Source: Saccostrea cucullata (taxonomy: Eukaryota). Taken from it: a stretch of DNA of 64,000 nt. The position numbers and the translations under genes are program-made. The notes under the pieces were generated by a model. That model had not been told where the DNA came from. It ran no database searches and was given only the letters and a program-made list of their open reading frames with translations. This document shows, in pieces, positions 18,401 to 43,769 of the stretch (position 1 is its first letter; each line of letters begins with the position of its first letter). Where the stretch lies: NCBI RefSeq assembly GCF_032062105.1, contig NW_026932430.1, positions 62,001 through 126,000 of the forward strand, written 5' to 3'.

Positions 18401-21400
18401 TGTTTCCTCGTATTTCTCCACCCAGCTCTCTGCCCAGCCATGCGCGAAGTCGATCAGGAGAATCAGCTGGATGATGATGAAGAGGAAGGCTCCAATCAAA
18501 CCAATGTACATCCAGGCTGTAATCAAACAACCAATCAGATCATTCCACAGATAAATAGCCTTAAATCAAACCAATGTACATCCAGGCTGTAATCAAGCAA
18601 CCAATCAGATCATTCCACAGATAAACAACCTTAAATCAAACCAATGTACTTCCAGGCTGTCAATCAAACAACCAATCAGATCATTCCACAGATAAATAGC
18701 CTTAACACATCAGTGTATAGGTATAGTCTCTTGTAGAAAGGGCTTCTTACCATAATAAAACAGTATTAAGTGAAAATAATTCTAGAATTTCTTGTAAATG
18801 TCATAATTTTTATTTTACTATAATTTTAATGGAGTCTATTTTATTTGCAATATTTTTTGTAAATCACATATGTGTAACAATGTTTGGTAAATAATTCCGG
18901 ATAGGCAATCTTCTTATATTTGGGTCCGGCTACTATTTGTATATTACGTAATTTCCGCCCAGCATCTTTGTACATCCTAACGTGAACGAAAGAACGATAA
19001 AGTTAAAACTTAGCGACTTGGTCAGGAGAACAAGGTAATTAGCAATTATGTATTCATATGCTCATAGTAACGTTTAACGTCCCTGATCTTGTTAGTTAAT
19101 GTTTCTGATTTTACATATTTATAACGATTACTCTGTATGTAGAGCATTTTTGTACAAGCATGGCTAGTGTGGTTTTATACATGGCGCCATTTTGACCCAC
19201 GTGTAGTGAAATTTTGATTGATAATTATTAGTCCCATAGCAGTTTGTATTTTATATATCATACCAATTTAATGATTAAATAGAACTGACTTATTATGTAA
19301 ATTATCGGTTGTGAGATTATTTGTTGTGCACATGGAATTTTTGTGTCATGATTTACTTAGAGTTATTGCCCTTTGTACGGTAATGTAAGGCAAGGCGCCA
19401 AGTTTGTTTACATGTTTTAAGTGAAGTAGCAAAGTCATATTTTCTGATTGTCACTGGTAATATTTTATTGAGATTAAGTAATGAATTAAATTAAACGTAT
19501 AGATGTTATTCATATTACATATTACTAGTCAATTAGCTGATATTATTGAATATTGAACTCTAGTCTACATGTGTATGTATACCAAAGGGTCATCTTAGTG
19601 CATGTTTGTGTACTTAATGTAATTTAGATTTTCTTGTTAATTATTACTGATAAATTTTGTATTTGTTTTACAGTTCTTACGTTGATGTATCGTTGATGTA
19701 ACCATCCTGAACTAATAAAGACATCATCAGTATATATGAACGTTCCTTTTATGACCAAGCCACTAATAGTAAGAACTTGACTTCAGTCTCATCAAGATGT
19801 CAAAGGTTGATGACAAAACAACCCCGGATGGTACAACGCCTGATGTTACGGATACAGCTAATGGTACAACATCCAGCGAAAACTATGATACAACGATGAA
19901 TAACGAAAACAACGAACCAGTGAATAATGAGACACAACAAACGACAAACAAAGACACTTTACTTGTGGGACAGAGGAAGTCTGAACAGGTACATAAACCC
20001 ACCGACCGAATGTTAGATTACATGGACCAGGAGTCTAAGAGACGTGAAAAGAGGATTCAATTGTGCTTCGATCGATGGAAGTTCAAGGTCAGAGAGTGTA
20101 GACAAAATGTGAAAATAGAGTCCAGTGAAGAAGATCTTGGAAACATGTTAGACGAAATATTGAAGCTGGAAAGAGAGGTCATAGAGGCTTTTGAACATTT
20201 GCGTAATTCATGTAGTGCACCACACCAAAGTGTAGTTCGGAAAGTGGACGCTTGTGTTGCTATTTCTAAAGACATAACTCATCTCATCAATGAAAAAATC
20301 TCAGGATTTGAAGACACCATAGACAGTCGTAAAGGTTTAAAGCATAATGAGTATGCTAGGTCTGTGTTTAGTGACTTAAGTTGGTCTAGTGTCTCGGAGA
20401 GTGATTCGATAAAATCACAACTGTCCTCAAAGTTCGTGGATGCCCTCGCAGATGTAGCAACCAAAAGGGTAGAACTGGAGTCGATAAAGAAAGAAGAAGA
20501 ACAGCAAACAAAGTTTGAAGCACTGCAAGAGCAACAACGAAAACTACTAGAAACTCAGCAGCGGGAAGTGAGAAAATTGCAAGCAGAGAAATCAGTTGCA
20601 ATGGCAGAAGCAAGACTTAAGGCCTACTCGGATTTGATGCAGGGGGATGTGAACATTGCTGCAGCCACAAGCAGACGTCAAACTGAACATGACACTTCCT
20701 TTAGAAGACGTCCAACTGACCCCCCGGCTGTTACGACTATTGTTAGCCACCCTTCGATTACACCAGTCGTCACGTCTACTACTCGTCCTACCGTTACACA
20801 CACTGGGAGGTCTACGTATACTCTATTCAACCCACCTACTAACAACGCTACAGTCAACTCGAACAGCACCACAAACGATGATTCTACAACAAGTATCTTA
20901 GCAAAGGTGTTTGCGGACTCAGTGAACCTTAATAGACTACCTATACCTGAGCCGTCAGTGTTCACAGGAGATCCACTTAGATTCGTAGAATGGAAGACAG
21001 CCTTTCATGCATTGATAGAACGTAAAGGCATTCCTGAGCAAGAGAGACTATTCTATTTGAAGAGATACGTGGCGGGTGAAGCACTACAGGCCATAGATGG
21101 ATTCTTCTACAGTGGAAGCAGCTCTGCATATGAAAACGCCAGACAAGTCCTGCAGGACAGATACGGACACCCATTTGTTATGCAGAAGGCATTTAGGAAG
21201 AGACTAGAGAATTGGCCCAAAATCACAGAAGGGAATTCAAAGGCTCTCAGAGATTTTGGAGACTTCCTACTAGCCTGTCAAGATGCAACGCCTCAGGTTC
21301 CAAGCCTTAAAATTCTGGACGACTGCTCTGAAAATCAGAAACTATTAAGCAAACTTCCTAATTGGGCTGCACTGCGTTGGAATCGTCAAGTTCAAGAAAC

Positions 21401-24400
21401 TATTGACTCTACTGGTGAATATCCATTATTCTCCAAGTTTGTGGACTTCGTCGTAAAGGAGGCTCGCATTGCTTGTAATCCAGTCTCGTCAATCTATGCG
21501 CTCAAGGACACTGACACTAAACCTTCAAGAGAGCACAAAAACTCGAGTTGCAAAGCAAATGTCCTCAACTCATCAGCACAATGCAACGGGAACTGACATG
21601 AGACCCAACTTATGTGATTATTGTGAGAAAGAAGGACATCCCTTGTTCAAGTGTGAGAAATTTATTAACTTGTCTATTGAGGATAAACGAGTGGTAGTGC
21701 GTAAGAAAAACCTGTGCTTTGGATGTCTACGCAAGGGCCACAGAAACAAGGACTGCAAGAAGAAGCATACGTGTGGTATCTGCAAGGGAAAACACCCAAC
21801 CTGCATGCATGAAGATGAATCACCAACAAGAAAGCAACAATTAGAGGTCAAGGAAGCCAGTTCCTTTCGTGTGAGCAGAGGATATGGTCACAGCACTCCA
21901 TGATCGTTCCGGTGTGGCTTTCTGTTCAGGAGAACCCCTCGCACGAGATATTGACATACCGGTATGCTCTCTTAGACACACAAAGTGACACTACCTTTGT
22001 GCTAGACGAAACGGCTGCTGCCTTGCATGTGAATAGACAACCAACACGTCTCAGCTTGTCTACCATGACCTCACAGCACACTATCATTAACAGTTTCCGT
22101 ATACAGAACCTGAGAGTGAGAGGGTTCAAGTCTACGGAATTTGTGACAATAGACAATGCATATACAAGAGACTTCATTCCTGCGGATCGCTCACATATAC
22201 CTGAAAGGAAAACTATAATGTGCTGGCCACACCTGAAGGAGCTTAGCAATGAACTACCACCTCTTCAGTCATGTGAAGTTGGACTCTTGATTGGATACAA
22301 TTGTCCTCAAGCTCTTGTACCAAGAAGAACTCTAACAGGAAACGAGAACCAGCCATATGGCATCCAGACACTGCTTGGTTGGAGCGTGGTTGGATACACA
22401 GATCGCACAAACTCGGACGTTACTGTTGTTTGTCACAGAACTTCAGTGAAGGAGCTGCATAGCTGTACACCCAGGGATGTCATAAAAACTTTGGAGAAAG
22501 ACTTTGCTCATGACAAGAATGAAGATATAAAGATATCTCAAGATGACATCGCCTTCCTTAACTTCATGAAAGAAAACATACAGCAGCATGAGGATAAGCA
22601 TTTGGAAATGCCTCTACCATTCAAGGAGCGACCCTCCCTGCCCAACAACAAGTCACTTGCATTGATTCGCTTAGATCATCTGAAACGAAAACTTAAAAGA
22701 GACCAGACATATCAAGAACATTACAAGACTTTCATGAGAGAAGTATTGGAAAGAGGCGACGCCGAACCAGTATCGTCAGATGGTGTCAGTGGAAATACAT
22801 GGTATATCCCACATCATGGTGTTTATCACCCGAGGAAACCTGGAAAGCTTAGAGTAGTTTTTGACTGTTCAGCAAGATTCAAAGAGGCTTCATTAAACGA
22901 ATACCTACTGACTGGTCCGGATCTAACAAATGCTTTGACTGGGGTTCTATGCAGATTCAGACAACACCCTGTGGCTGTCATGTGTGATGTGGAGAAGATG
23001 TTCCACCAGTTTGTTGTACATGAAGCAGACCGAGACTTCTTACGACTCCTATGGTGGGAGGATGGAAACTTGGATGCAGAACCCAAGGAATATCGTATGA
23101 GAGTACACCTGTTTGGAGCGCCTTCCTCCCCAGGATGTGCTAATTATGGACTCAAGTTCTTAGCCAAAAGCCAAGAAGAGCAACTTCAAGCTGCATCATT
23201 CTTTATGCAGAATAATTTCTATGTGGATGACGGGCTCACCAGTGTTGAGACAGAAGAAGAAGCTATCAAGTTAATTCAAGATGCACAGATTCTGTGTGCC
23301 AATGGTGGATTGCGTCTACACAAATTTATTTCCAACAACAAGAACGTAATAAATTCTGTTGCTGAATCAGAGAGAGCGGCAGATGTTAAAGACTTAGACC
23401 TTTCACATGAACAATTACCTATGGAACAAGCACTTGGTATAAAGTGGAACATTGAAGAGGATGCATTTTGCTTCAAAGCTGTCGACCAGAATGCATCTCC
23501 TACTAGGCGCAGTATGCTATCCATTGTAGCATCAATATTCGACCCATTGGGATTTCTCTCCCCTTTCACACTGACTGGGAAACGAATACTGCAGGAGATG
23601 TGTCAAGGTAACATAGGATGGAATGACCCTCTACCCGCAGACAGACTACTTGAATGGGAAGCTTGGATCAAAGATCTACAGAACCTTGATCTCATCAAAG
23701 TCCCAAGATGCCTCATACCAAGTGATTTTGGCAAACCGAAAACCTTTGAGCTGCATCATTTCTCGGATGCAAGCACAAATGGCTATGGACAGTGTTCTTA
23801 CCTTAGAGTTGTAAAGGGAACGAAGGTACATTGTGCTTTAGTTATCGCAAAGGCAAGAGTAGCACCTCTAAAGGTTGTAACGATACCTCGCTTGGAATTG
23901 ACAGCTGCAGTATTGTCAGTGAAGGTCAGTTTATTTCTGAAGAGGGAGCTGAATCTACCTATCAACAGAGAATACTTTTGGACAGACTCTAAAGTGGTGC
24001 TTGGCTACATCAACAACGAGGCTCGCAGGTTCCACGTATTTGTTGCAAACCGTGTACAGATGATAAGAGATGCAACAAAACCTCATCAGTGGCTATACAT
24101 TGAATCTGCCAGCAACCCAGCCGATCACGCCTCGCGTGGACTGCGTGCATCTGAAGTTAATGATTCTTCATGGTTGACCGGCCCTCCATTACTATGGCAG
24201 TCCATCATTGAAAGCAAAGGTGTTGAAACAGAGTTGCAACTTGGAGACCCTGAAGTAAGATCTGCAAGAACTCTATGCACCAAAACAAAGGCTCATTCTA
24301 GTATCCTTGACATTCTGTCTCGATTCTCATCTTGGACCAAAATGATATCCTTCATCGCCAGAATGCAGAGACTCGCCAATGGTGTCAAGGGAACCTATCC

Positions 24401-27400
24401 ATCAAATCCGATTGAAAGACTTCAAGCAGAACAAACTATCATCAAACACGTTCAACATGAAACCTTTCAAGATGCTATCAGCGCTCTCGAGAAATCTGAA
24501 GGGCTACCAAAGTCTAACTCCCTGAAACCCCTAGAGCCTATTCTACAAGATGGGATACTTTGAGTCGGAGGCCGACTGAGGAAGGCAACCCTGTCTGATG
24601 CTTACAAGAACCCAATAATCTTACCCAGAAATGGTCATATCACGCACTTGATTCTTTCACATGCTCACAAGGAAACCTTTCATCAAGGAAGAGGAATTAC
24701 CCTGAACAAGCTCCGGTCTCTTGGCTATTGGATTGTAGGAGGAAGTAAGACAGTAGCCAGCTACATATGTCAGTGCGTTATATGCAGGAAGTTGAGACGA
24801 CCGACAGAGACACAGAGAATGGCAGACTTGCCCAAGGAGCGTATGGAACCATCTCCGCCTTTCACATATTGCGGTATGGACTGTTTCGGCCCATTTATTG
24901 TGAAACAGGGACGGAAGGAAATAAAACGATATGGGTTACTATTTACCTGCATGTGTTCTCGTGCTATCCACATTGAGATGTTAGATGACATGTCTACAGA
25001 TGCGTTTATCAATGGTTTGCGCTGTTTTATCGCCATTAGAGGAACTGTGCGACAGTTGCGCTCGGACCAAGGAACCAATTTCATTGGAGCTAAGAATGAG
25101 TTTCAGAAAGCACTCAACAAGGAAAGAATATGTTCATTCTTGGCAGAGAAACACTGTGAATTCGTGTTTAACGCGCCCAGTGCTAGTCATACAGGAGGTG
25201 TATGGGAACGTCAAATAAGAACCGTCCGTAACATACTCAATGCCATACTATTACTTTGTCCTGGAAGACTAGATGATTCCTCACTGAGAACCGTATTCTA
25301 TGAAGCGATGTCTATTGTAAACGGTCGCCCACTAACGGTTAGTGAGATAGACAACCCAGACTCACTGAAGCCGCTTACTCCGAACCACATCTTAACTGGG
25401 AAGACCACTTCTCCCCTTCCCCCTCCTGGAGAGTTCGTGAAGGAAGACATATATGTCCGTAAACGTTGGAGACGTGTACAGTACCTTATGGAACAATTTT
25501 GGTCCCGTTGGAGACATGAATACTTGGCTCAGATCACCTTACGACAGAAGTGGCATGGAGTTCGTCGGAACATCAAGGAAGGTGACATTGTTCTGGTGAA
25601 GGACGTTGACCTGCCACGCAACCAATGGCCTCTTGGTAGAGTTGTCGAAGCCAACCCAGATGATGATGGTCTTGTACGGAGAGTCAAGGTGAAAATGCAG
25701 TCTGGAGTTCTGGAGAGAACAGTTCATAAGCTTGTGCTACTCATTGCAAATTAATGTAACTGCTATGTTATAGTTGTATGTTGTATTCTAGACGATATGT
25801 AGATTGCAAGCTTAACACCTTTATTGATACTTTGAATGTCTAAAATCATGCTGATTTTGGTGGGAGTGTAAATGTCATAATTTTTATTTTACTATAATTT
25901 TAATGGAGTCTATTTTATTTGCAATATTTTTTGTAAATCACATATGTGTAACAATGTTTGGTAAATAATTCCGGATAGGCAATCTTCTTATATTTGGGTC
26001 CGGCTACTATTTGTATATTACGTAATTTCCGCCCAGCATCTTTGTACATCCTAACGTGAACGAAAGAACGATAAAGTTAAAACTTAGCGACTTGGTCAGG
26101 AGAACAAGGTAATTAGCAATTATGTATTCATATGCTCATAGTAACGTTTAACGTCCCTGACCTTGTTAGTTAATGTTTCTGATTTTACATATTTATAACG
26201 ATTACTCTGTATGTAGAGCATTTTTGTACAAGCATGGCTAGTGTGGTTTTATACATGGCGCCATTTTGACCCATGTGTAGTGAAATTTTGATTGATAATT
26301 ATTAGTCCCATAGCAGTTTGTATTTTATATATCATACCAATTTAATGATTAAATAGAACTGAATTATTATGTAAATTATCGGTTGTGAGATTATTTGTTG
26401 TGCACATGGAATTTTTGTGTCATGATTTACTTAGAGTTATTGCCCTTTGTACGGTAATGTAAGGCAAGGCGCCAAGTTTGTTTACATGTTTTAAGTGAAG
26501 TAGCAAAGTCATATTTTCTGATTGTCACTGGTAATATTTTATTGAGATTAAGTAATGAATTAAATTAAACGTATAGATGTTATTCATATTACATATTACT
26601 AGTCAATTAGCTGATATTATTGAATATTGAACTCTAGTCTACATGTGTATGTATACCAAAGGGTCATCTTAGTGCATGTTTGTGTACTTAATGTAATTTA
26701 GATTTTCTTGTTAATTATTACTGATAAATTTTGTATTTGTTTTACAGTTCTTACGTTGATGTATCGTTGATGTAACCATCCTGAACTAATAAAGACATCA
26801 TCAGTATATATGAACGTTCCTTTTATGACCAAGCCACTAATATTTCTGTTTCAAATTATACTTCTATACTTATCATCTAATGATATAAACAAGTGTTTTC
26901 ATTTTCCCCTCAAACATTAGCCAATGTTACCCCTCTGAATCTGTATAAAAGCATACCATGCATTTAATGGCAGTTCCTTTAAAGAATATGAAGATTTTTA
27001 TCTAACAATACTATATAAGGCAATTCAAGAAGCAGAGTATAAAACATTTCTTAGCATCTTTTTAAAAATAAAATTTGTTAAAAGAAAAAAAAACATTTAA
27101 ATGATGTGTTGTAAGATAAGTACTTACCAATACCAAATTCTCCTCTAGGAATGAAGAAAGCTCCAACACAGATAGCAATTAGAACGAGAATCTTAATGGC
27201 CCAAAAACTGAAATTAAATTTTACAATCATGTATATCAGCTGTATATCAGCATGTTTATTTGAAAAGAAGTATGAAAGAAAAAACTTCCAAGTGTACATC
27301 AAATTTTTATCTTCATCTCATCTACTACCTATGTACCTATCAGTAGATTAATTTAACTGTCCTTACTTTGTCACGGGGACTACAGATACGTACAATACAG

Positions 27401-31233: not shown

Positions 31234-32023
31234 TTAGACATTTCTGCACATACACCTGTTGTCAATACAATGCCACTCAGAATCACATGTTCCAGAACAC
31301 TGGTCTTTGCTTGTGCATCCTTTGTACGTAAAAAAATGTATTGTGTTTTAGTAAAGAAGATCGCAGAAGTGCNNNNNNNNNNNNNNNNNNNNNNNNNNNN
31401 NNNNNNNNNNNNNNNNNNNNNNNNNNNNNNNNNNNNNNNNNNNNNNNNNNNNNNNNNNNNNNNNNNNNNNNNNNNNNNNNNNNNNNNNNNNNNNNNNNNN
31501 NNNNNNNNNNNNNNNNNNNNGTAGAAAGAACTATGGAAATCGAAGCCAGATGTAAGCCACCGATCTCCTCCTTTTCCAGTATTTTTTTTTTAATAATTAA
31601 TATTTTTGACCCCCCCCCCGGTATGATAGACAACACACCTAAATTACTTACTGTCAGACATTGAGGGGTTGCAGGTACATAGAAAATGATTGCAGTCGAC
31701 TTGGTACCCAGAGTCACAGGTCACGTGATCACAGTCTGCATCAGAAAAGCATCTCTCAGATGCAACGAAAGCTGAAAATAAATATATCAAATTAAAGAAA
31801 TCTTAAAAAATCTGAATTATTTATCACTTTTTAATAATATAAAATTTTAATTTTAAGATATGGCGAAAATAATTTTGTTTTCAGTTTTCATTGAACCTAT
31901 AAAAAGATGATTTTATATTCTATTATTTTATTAAACCTATATAGACAATTCTCATGCCTATAGTAGTAACACTCCAGTAGACTCACCAACAAGAGCACAG
32001 AAAATGATCAGACATTTCATCAT
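31234..32023 (-). CDS. Secreted 12-Cys peptide, cvSI-like (MEROPS I84) serine protease inhibitor, 80 aa
   Basis: Exons 31987-32023, 31652-31771, 31234-31319 (243 nt, phase-1 GT-AG introns) give MMKCLIIFCALVAFVASERCFSDADCDHVTCDSGYQVDCNHFLCTCNPSMSDRCTSKDQCSGTCDSEWHCIDNRCMCRNV*. It has a signal peptide and two 6-Cys modules ending CxC. TATA-like element at 32061-32070. Confidence 0.85.
31373..31520. other. Assembly gap (N run)
   Basis: Run of N. Confidence 1.
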
Positions 32024-41891: not shown

Positions 41892-43769
41892 TGTTAATAT
41901 AAGGGACTACCACATAGTGTTCATAGTCTATGTCTGACAGTGTTAACCTTGTGCAGTTATTGGAATTCATAGGGTGAATGAGAATGAAACATGTAGCACA
42001 AATGTGTCAGTATATTTATTAGACAAAATGTTCTGAGCTTTACTCCCAAGTCAAACTGATTTTATTTTCAACTATTTTTTTTATGAATAAAGAGTTGCAT
42101 CCCTTATTGGATTTAAGAAGTTAGTGTAAAGATTGAAGAACATGGACTTTTAAAAAATATGTAAGAACTTGACCATAAACAACTTTTTTATCCACATTCT
42201 TATCTACGGACACCAAAGAGCAGAAAGTACAAGTACCCAGTACTTACCGGGTATTATTAGTTTATCAGTCAGTTACTCCGGACCCTTCCAACAGAATTTC
42301 CTGAACCTTTGTTGTTAATAAACAAATAATGTTTAGATGTGCATATTCACAGAGAAATTCTGATTCAGTTTTATCTAGGAGTTCCTGTGGAATCATCATT
42401 GATAAAATTGTGGTTAAAGGTGACCCACAAAATCCATAAACAATGGTCCCCCCACTACCTCTGTGCACATTTTATCTACCAGGTAAATTCAGGATATCAA
42501 GAATTTGCATCATACCAGGACTGAGATGATTATGATTCCATGTGATAATGTCTTAAATTAGAATTTTTCTCTCATAGTAATTGTTAACTGTAGAAACTTG
42601 ATTAACATCAAGAAACAAAATTTATTATCAGTTTTATTGATCAAAAATACAATGGACAAAACCTTTCATAATAAATGCAAAAAAATATCACAACAAATAA
42701 CTACCCTAGTGTGAATGCATGTAATAAATGAAAAAAAATTAAAATACTTTCCACACCATGTCAACTGTAGACAGCTTTCAACAATGATCAACATGTACAT
42801 GTATATCTTTAAATTATAACATCTTCTCGATGTTTGGATCAGTTCAAACACACAATTTCAGTAAAAGAATAATACTGAAGAACATTTTAAATAAAATTTT
42901 TAAAATTAACTAAATTTAATACTGCTAGAATTTGCACCCTCAATTTTTTCTTGTTTTCTCTGAGTAGCTAAATTTTTACTTAATGAACATTATCATGGCA
43001 ACATCTTTCTATACTAATTAGGTAAAGAACATAATACTGAGACAAGGTTTTTGTTTTTGTAATAATGCTGAAGTTTTCTGTATAAAACATAGAAATAAGA
43101 CATGACATATATCACATGTAAATCTGAATGATGAATTATGACAGCTATTTCATTATGAGAAACTAAGGACTAAAATTAAGACGAGTCCCCTTTTACCATT
43201 CTGACATGACAAGACTCCTTGTTAAAAAACACACTGAATGAGTGGTTAAGATATTTTTGACTCAGATCATTGAATTTACATCTAAATTTGATTCATTATT
43301 TTCATCATTCTAATCTTTGAAATTGATAGAGATTTTCTTCATTAGTTTATAAATAACTACACTACTTAATCCACCCTCTGTATTCTATGACTTAATTGAC
43401 AGGTAAAGTGAAGAACAAGTTTTAAAACTGAAAATATGATATATGGCAAGAAACCACAAGATAAGTTTAAAACATTCTGGTAAAATAAACTAAATACATA
43501 ATACTGAAATGTTGCTCTTAAATCACAGAGAATTTCAATGAGTAAACATGTAAGATATCACAGCCTAATAAATAAATAATACAATGTACATCTATAAAGT
43601 AGCTATGTTGGCAGGATAACATGTAGAATACTATTCTGTGATTATTTTTAAAAATCTTGAGCATTTTGAAAAAACGTATCATCTTTCAATAGTATCATTG
43701 AATTAATTTAAACGAAAAATTCACCAGAAGCAATCAAGGATGACATCAATTTAACAACCATAAGGTCTT

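Follow-up and report, generated by a model that had tools for sequence, protein, structure and literature searches.

How an LTR retroelement primes minus-strand synthesis when its primer binding site (PBS) lacks the TGG that pairs with a tRNA end is the question raised by a BEL/Pao element in the window, the 64,000-nucleotide stretch of Saccostrea cucullata DNA that we analyzed. An earlier note on this DNA had suggested that the primer is the element's own leader, completed only when an intron inside the LTR is spliced out. We examined this suggestion in the window copy, its relatives in the same genome, related elements from other animals, and RNA reads.

The element is bounded by LTRs of 976 bp each, found as a direct repeat at a spacing of 7074 (3 mismatches, 99.7% identity; Table 1). 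Because these LTRs enclose a gag with DUF1759 and a pol with RVT_1, Peptidase_A17, integrase, and DUF5641, the element belongs to BEL/Pao and not to the Ty3/Gypsy lineage of Tf1 and sushi. The Pfam content of the pol and gag regions comprised DUF1759 (1e-10), Peptidase_A17 (4e-49), DUF5641 (2e-30), rve, and Integrase_H2C2, and the homologues also bear Pao domains. The best protein matches bear the name of Saccostrea cucullata, an oyster. An exact-protein database look-up of the window gag and two homologues returned no record. The window copy is defective: its reading frame leaves that of gag near 21457-21594, is regained near 21819-21901, and meets an in-frame stop at 24561. Both LTRs of this copy carry an 11-nt tandem duplication (GTTGATGTA+2; 19681-19702 and 26755-26776) that adjoins the proposed primer 3' end, and every other family copy has a single unit. 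Elsewhere in the window, positions 31373-31520 are a run of 148 N.

Table 1. Features of the BEL/Pao element, in window coordinates
Feature	Position	Strand	Remarks
Whole element	18793-26842		BEL/Pao, LTR-bounded
5' LTR, 976 bp	18793..19768	+	Direct-repeat comparison
TSD TTTCT, 5 bp	18788-92 and 26843-47		Flanks both LTRs
3' end of LTR exon 1	19010..19034	+	Invariant in 22/22 aligned family copies
Exon-1 arm of second helix, CTTGGTCA	19017-24	+	
CAAG, exon-1 share of anti-PBS	19031-34	+	
Predicted spliceosomal intron, 639 nt	19035..19673	+	Splice-site sequence; donor GTAATT
TACTGAT, branch-like	19645-51		23 nt before acceptor CAG
T-rich tract and CAG acceptor	19655-73	+	
First 7 nt of exon 2, TTCTTAC	19674..19680	+	3' share of anti-PBS
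Proposed primer 3' end	C19680	+	
Remainder of exon 2	19681..19768	+	Would-be template of strong-stop DNA
AATAAA	19714-19	+	Inside exon 2
U5 arm of second helix, TGACCAAG	19752-59	+	
Primer binding site, GTAATGAACTTG-type 11-mer	19769..19779	+	Reads GTAAGAACTTG; no TGG
gag-pol	19797..25754	+	DUF1759, RVT_1, Pao 'Peptidase_A17', integrase, DUF5641
Polypurine tract GGTGGGAG	25859..25866	+	Directly before 3' LTR
3' LTR	25867..26842	+	Same intron-like segment at 26109-26747

The earlier note had placed a PBS without TGG directly after the 5' LTR, and this is what we found: G19769 is the first post-LTR base, and no TGG occurs from there up to the ATG at 19797. The element has no tRNA-type PBS, that is, one with a TGG start and at least 10 nt of a tRNA 3' end; its PBS is complementary to its own leader. 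The intron-like segment that had been described inside the LTR has all its letters in place, with CAAG|GTAATT at 19034/35, TACTGAT, a T-rich tract, and CAG|TTCTTAC at 19673/74. These are the sequence features of a U2-type intron (GT-AG ends, a donor near GTRAGT, a pyrimidine tract, and a branch-like site), as in 13 other families. Joining CAAG to TTCTTAC yields the exact reverse complement of the 11-nt PBS, as claimed, and the unspliced match is indeed weaker, at 9 nt only (19672-80).

How easily such a split complement arises by chance depends on the splice sites allowed. For the window element alone, shuffled PBS strings reach 11 nt with p = 0.012 when any GT/AG site is allowed and with p = 0.0012 when only strong splice sites are used; one unrelated PBS likewise scores 11 on the window LTR. 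Taken singly, the split complement of the window element is weak, suggestive evidence. Exon 1 gives only 4 nt of it, and the unspliced 9-mer could be enough. A 13-nt string equal to the PBS plus the next 2 nt also occurs at 42161-42173 of the window, in flanks without element similarity, as a chance match or a very old remnant.

In the S. cucullata genome, the window family is represented by some 40 matches to the 5' junction, at 68 to 100% identity. All of them keep the PBS, the acceptor with exon 2, and the U5 end, and the changes that fall within the helix are all compatible with G-U pairing. In alignments read row by row, the last 25 nt of exon 1 and the donor are invariant in every one of the 22 aligned copies, and many indels lie in both flanks. 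In the 5' LTR of one insertion (L012/L013, on contigs C12853 and C6242), exon 1 runs to 19034 and continues straight into the final 9 nt of U5. The missing segment, 19035-19759, has gt..ag ends and CAAG microhomology, the 3' LTR is full length, and this is the only such copy found. Because the standard reverse-transcription scheme cannot yield unequal LTRs, L012/L013 may be a later deletion or a recombinant.

A genome search with the pol region revealed many further BEL/Pao families at 39 to 56% identity. We took both ends for 14 further elements and could define LTR pairs in 12, resulting in ten sister families; the stretches taken for C2084 and C16783 held no usable LTR pair. None of the 11 own-genome families (the window's included) has a TGG-type PBS. 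In nine of the 11, a strong donor and a strong acceptor inside the LTR join into a perfect PBS complement of 9 to 16 nt; a donor counts as strong if it departs from GTRAGT at no more than one position, and an acceptor if it is a pyrimidine-rich YAG. The complements in the nine families measure 11, 12, 16, 15, 15, 12, 9, 11, and 11 nt, with offsets of 0 to 4 from the LTR end, and the per-family chance with strong sites is p = 0.0002 to 0.002. In three families (C12782, C22096, and C17580), exon 1 contributes 10 to 11 nt, compared with only 6 nt matched by the unspliced LTR. A different arrangement is seen in C2263 (LTR 164 bp) and C11541 (LTR 350 bp), at loci L075-L078, which have an 8-nt contiguous complement right after a pyrimidine-CAG and an AT-rich box about 25 nt upstream of it. 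No splice donor was found in these short LTRs, and C2263 and C11541 may represent a plain, Tf1-like variant of this system that does without splicing.

Homologues of gag and pol were used to reach contigs from other species. The joined exons are CAAG + TTTTTAC against GTAAAAACTTG in Mya arenaria, CGAG + TTCGAC against GTCGAACTCG in Betta splendens, TATAG + TTCCAC against GTGGAACTATA in Xenopus laevis (11 nt spliced, compared with an unspliced match of 12 nt), and AGAG + TTTCAC against GTGAAACTCT in Diadema setosum. On Logan contig L083, the donor reads TAAG|GTATTA, the acceptor is followed by TTCTTAC, and the PBS ends in A where the window has G, which amounts to a compensatory change in the exon-1 share (T:A in L083, C:G in the window). 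Another difference of this kind in the exon-1 share separates the C11760 family (G:C) from Diadema (A:T). None of these 5 elements from elsewhere has a TGG-type PBS, giving 0 of 16 elements overall. L084, with its LTR not defined, was left out of scoring, and there was no usable LTR pair in the stretches taken for Pinctada (L085) and Lingula (L103). L081 and L082, Logan contigs from two runs, contain a related element (gag 53% identical) with the same 11-nt PBS; the two share their first base, 40 nt upstream of the PBS, which would fit an assembly-graph branch at a poly(A) site.

In total, we detected the split complement in 14 families from six animal sources (oyster, Mya, Betta, Xenopus, Diadema, and the Logan contig). 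The comparison of PBS and splice junction across families that the earlier note had proposed was positive in these 14. With the families registered at the primer 3' end, each of positions 1 to 12 shows two to four Watson-Crick pair types, and there are no mismatches inside the helix of 9 to 16 bp in any family. This pattern is far beyond chance. The geometry is also consistent: in 13 of the 14 families, a poly(A) signal lies 9 to 161 nt past the acceptor, and the LTR ends 53 to 223 nt past the acceptor. A short strong-stop DNA with a repeat for strand transfer requires this spacing of acceptor, poly(A) signal, and LTR end.

Whether the predicted introns are spliced can be read from DNA copies. 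We searched the genome with 16- to 20-nt patterns of the predicted junctions or of the anti-PBS, and the intron-loss hits came from 20-nt junctions. The C12782-type junction has one exact occurrence, a solo LTR (L088) with its own 5-bp TSD, which aligns to positions 2-211 of the reference LTR and then straight into the exon 2 region. Two copies of the C22096-type junction lie 7.8 kb from each other on contig C10974, in what are both LTRs (L100 and L101) of a full element with the TSD TAATA, an intact PBS, and a pol match between the LTRs; in the alignment of each LTR, 1-187 is followed directly by 711-914. Contig C22404 carries two copies of the C12927-type junction, 6.9 kb from each other on either side of a pol match, and these are known by coordinates only. 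Reversed control patterns gave 0 matches at up to one mismatch in these three positive junction searches. The predicted splice sites are therefore used by the spliceosome in three sister families, and the spliced RNA has been reverse-transcribed and integrated.

The claim of a real LTR intron thus holds, through precise intron-less LTRs, for C12782, C22096, and C12927; for the window family, the genome junction search found no copy of the joined form, and it likewise found no intron-less copy for the C11760-family junction. Matches to the C17580 and C11194 junctions were rejected as unrelated repeats or chance. Intron-less copies are rare, which shows that the template normally has the intron of its 3' LTR in place. 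The retention that the earlier note had proposed is therefore correct as a rule and fails as a universal, since copies with both LTRs spliced exist.

RNA reads bearing on the window family came from three oligo-dT raw-read runs of S. cucullata (X20-X22), with 4, 10, and 20 reads over 18700-20500, none of which spans the joint at 19034. Some of the reads do lie over the intron; their source could be the U3 of the 3' LTR, unspliced RNA, or DNA. One contig run covers the LTR and may contain DNA. On the LTR, the X20-X22 reads over 18700-20500 map in either orientation, and several agree with other subfamily copies better than with the window copy. A loose read end at 19688 resembles an L003-type variant.

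In addition to the anti-PBS, exon 1 of the window element contains a segment complementary to U5 (19017-24 with 19752-59). A helix in the same place, with other letters, is present in Mya, L083, C22096, C17580, C11194, C12927, and Betta, making 8 families with the window's. It reaches 10 nt in C22096 (p = 0.003) and 9 nt in C11194 (p = 0.01). Formed together in cis, the two helices make up a pseudoknot. In the nested fold, the joined leader adopts helix 2, and helix 1 (anti-PBS with PBS) costs 2.2 kcal/mol more; this fold is uninformative (z = -1.1, local script).

We consider it probable that minus-strand synthesis is primed by the element's own spliced leader. The start of transcription, the cut, the priming, and its action in cis or in trans are steps that we infer as follows. 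The window LTR would hold a genuine spliceosomal intron, and transcription would start upstream of 19010. Removal of 19035-19673 from the 5' leader would join CAAG to TTCTTAC as an 11-nt anti-PBS, which would pair with the PBS beginning at the first post-LTR base, and the second helix would support this pairing. As in Tf1, a cut, here after C19680 and probably the work of the element's RNase H, would expose a 3'-OH, from which RT would extend through 19768-19681 to produce minus-strand strong-stop DNA. This DNA would transfer to the matching stretch of the 3' LTR, and plus-strand synthesis would copy the primer back into the PBS. Such rewriting of the PBS from the primer would explain why the two stay perfectly matched. 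The model gives no account of how the 3' LTR normally retains its intron, and we count this against it. With a little more reserve, we also favor a broader reading, in which a large and ancient BEL/Pao clade (oyster, clam, sea urchin, teleost, and frog) does without a host primer; the spliceosome would assemble the primer from two LTR exons, reverse transcription would be licensed by splicing, and each cycle would write the PBS anew from the element's own leader.

Self-priming could instead proceed without splicing, in the manner of Tf1, if transcription started at the initiator-like CAG|TT near 19672 and its first 9 nt paired with the PBS. The 9-nt contiguous complement is conserved in all copies of the window family, C2263 and C11541 have only a contiguous match with the AT-rich box about 25 nt upstream, and in Xenopus the unspliced match reaches 12 nt. 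However, a start at the CAG cannot account for C12782, C22096, and C17580, because exon 1 supplies 10 to 11 of the paired bases there, and it leaves unexplained both the compensatory changes in the exon-1 share and the invariant exon-1 end and donor. Moreover, because intron-less LTR copies exist, transcripts start upstream of the donor. We therefore find an unspliced start quite unlikely. The pairing of junction and PBS could also be real and serve regulation, by masking the PBS or the gag start or by sorting RNAs for packaging, with some host RNA as the primer. The gag ATG lies just 28 nt past the LTR end, and the nested fold of the joined leader does not favor helix 1, both of which would suit such a role. 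Yet the helix ends 0 to 4 nt from the LTR boundary in 14 of 14 families, where a primer must end, and no single host RNA fits because the PBS letters differ between families. A regulatory role with a host primer is, in our judgment, unlikely.

Searches for a host primer bear on this reading and on a related one, with a host tRNA, a tRNA half, or another fragment as the primer at 19769 onward. Exact matches to the 16-nt anti-PBS number only 11 in the genome, and nine of them are recognized as element copies, with no further copy recognized; one-mismatch matches in the genome search are no commoner than in the control, and no Rfam or tRNA match was found in the LTR. Copia-type elements do use an internal tRNA fragment, which gives the idea a precedent, but the lack of TGG, the covariation of the PBS with each family's own LTR, and these searches make it very improbable. 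The window contains a near-identical tRNA-like pair on the minus strand (6147-6219 and 6379-6451, 232 bp apart), with a 4-nt anticodon according to ARAGORN; the two are probably SINE or tRNA-derived repeats, and neither is complementary to the PBS. Chance complementarity from a flexible search would be in keeping with shuffled PBS strings reaching 11 nt in about 1% of trials for the window element alone (any GT/AG) and with the unrelated PBS that scores 11 on its LTR. It is hardly credible in view of fourteen independent positives with good splice sites, consistent geometry, and DNA copies spliced at the predicted junctions, and at the level of the clade the 14 families and the intron-less DNA copies refute it.

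Priming in BEL/Pao elements receives little attention in the literature that we consulted. The main survey of these elements (PMC3118150) never mentions PBS, primer, tRNA, or intron, and our full-text literature searches found no self-priming, LTR intron, or PBS described for BEL/Pao, in agreement with the earlier note, which knew of no description of splice-dependent self-priming in this group. Self-priming is already known in Tf1/sushi; Tf1, Tf2, Maggy, Skippy, Cft-1, and sushi-ichi, all Ty3/Gypsy, are listed as self-priming (PMC6934838). What is new is the proposed splice-dependent variant in BEL/Pao and its wide phylogenetic reach. Priming by the spliced leader would be a third route for LTR retroelements, beside host tRNA and the contiguous self-primer. 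If true, it would link retrotransposition directly to the spliceosome, and it would account for the failure of tRNA-based annotation tools to detect a PBS in such elements. The design amounts to a simple sequence rule, open to testing in the genome of any animal, and the intron-less LTR copies preserve a natural record of this process.

Tf1 uses as its primer the first 11 nt of its transcript, a contiguous stretch, and obtains the 3'-OH by a cut in the leader. The window element resembles Tf1 and sushi in that it has no tRNA PBS, about 11 nt of its own leader pair with a PBS adjoining the LTR, and a leader cut would give the 3'-OH. Unlike these Ty3/Gypsy elements, it belongs to BEL/Pao, and unlike in Tf1, its full complement appears only after removal of an LTR intron, lies inside the leader, and is accompanied by the exon 1-U5 helix; at least 25 conserved exon-1 nt upstream argue against the complement being the very 5' end of the transcript. 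HIV-1 and RSV are tRNA-primed, with a PAS/anti-PAS or U5-TpsiC contact besides the pairing of primer and PBS. The window element has the same two contacts in the same segment order (the primer's 3' end pairs with the PBS, and a segment farther upstream in the primer pairs with U5, immediately 5' of the PBS), whereas the proposed primer is the element's own spliced RNA and not a host tRNA. Copia and Ty5-type elements, which are primed by an internal tRNA fragment, also have a PBS without TGG and a primer 3' end made by cleavage, as proposed here. Their PBS matches a host tRNA and is common to families, whereas in the elements studied here the PBS tracks each family's own LTR. Finally, the host spliceosome acts on a donor in the 5' leader, as it does in retroviral leader splicing; however, the retroviral major donor lies downstream of the PBS and gives rise to subgenomic mRNA, whereas here the LTR holds both splice sites, upstream of the PBS, and the functional sequence is that of the junction itself.
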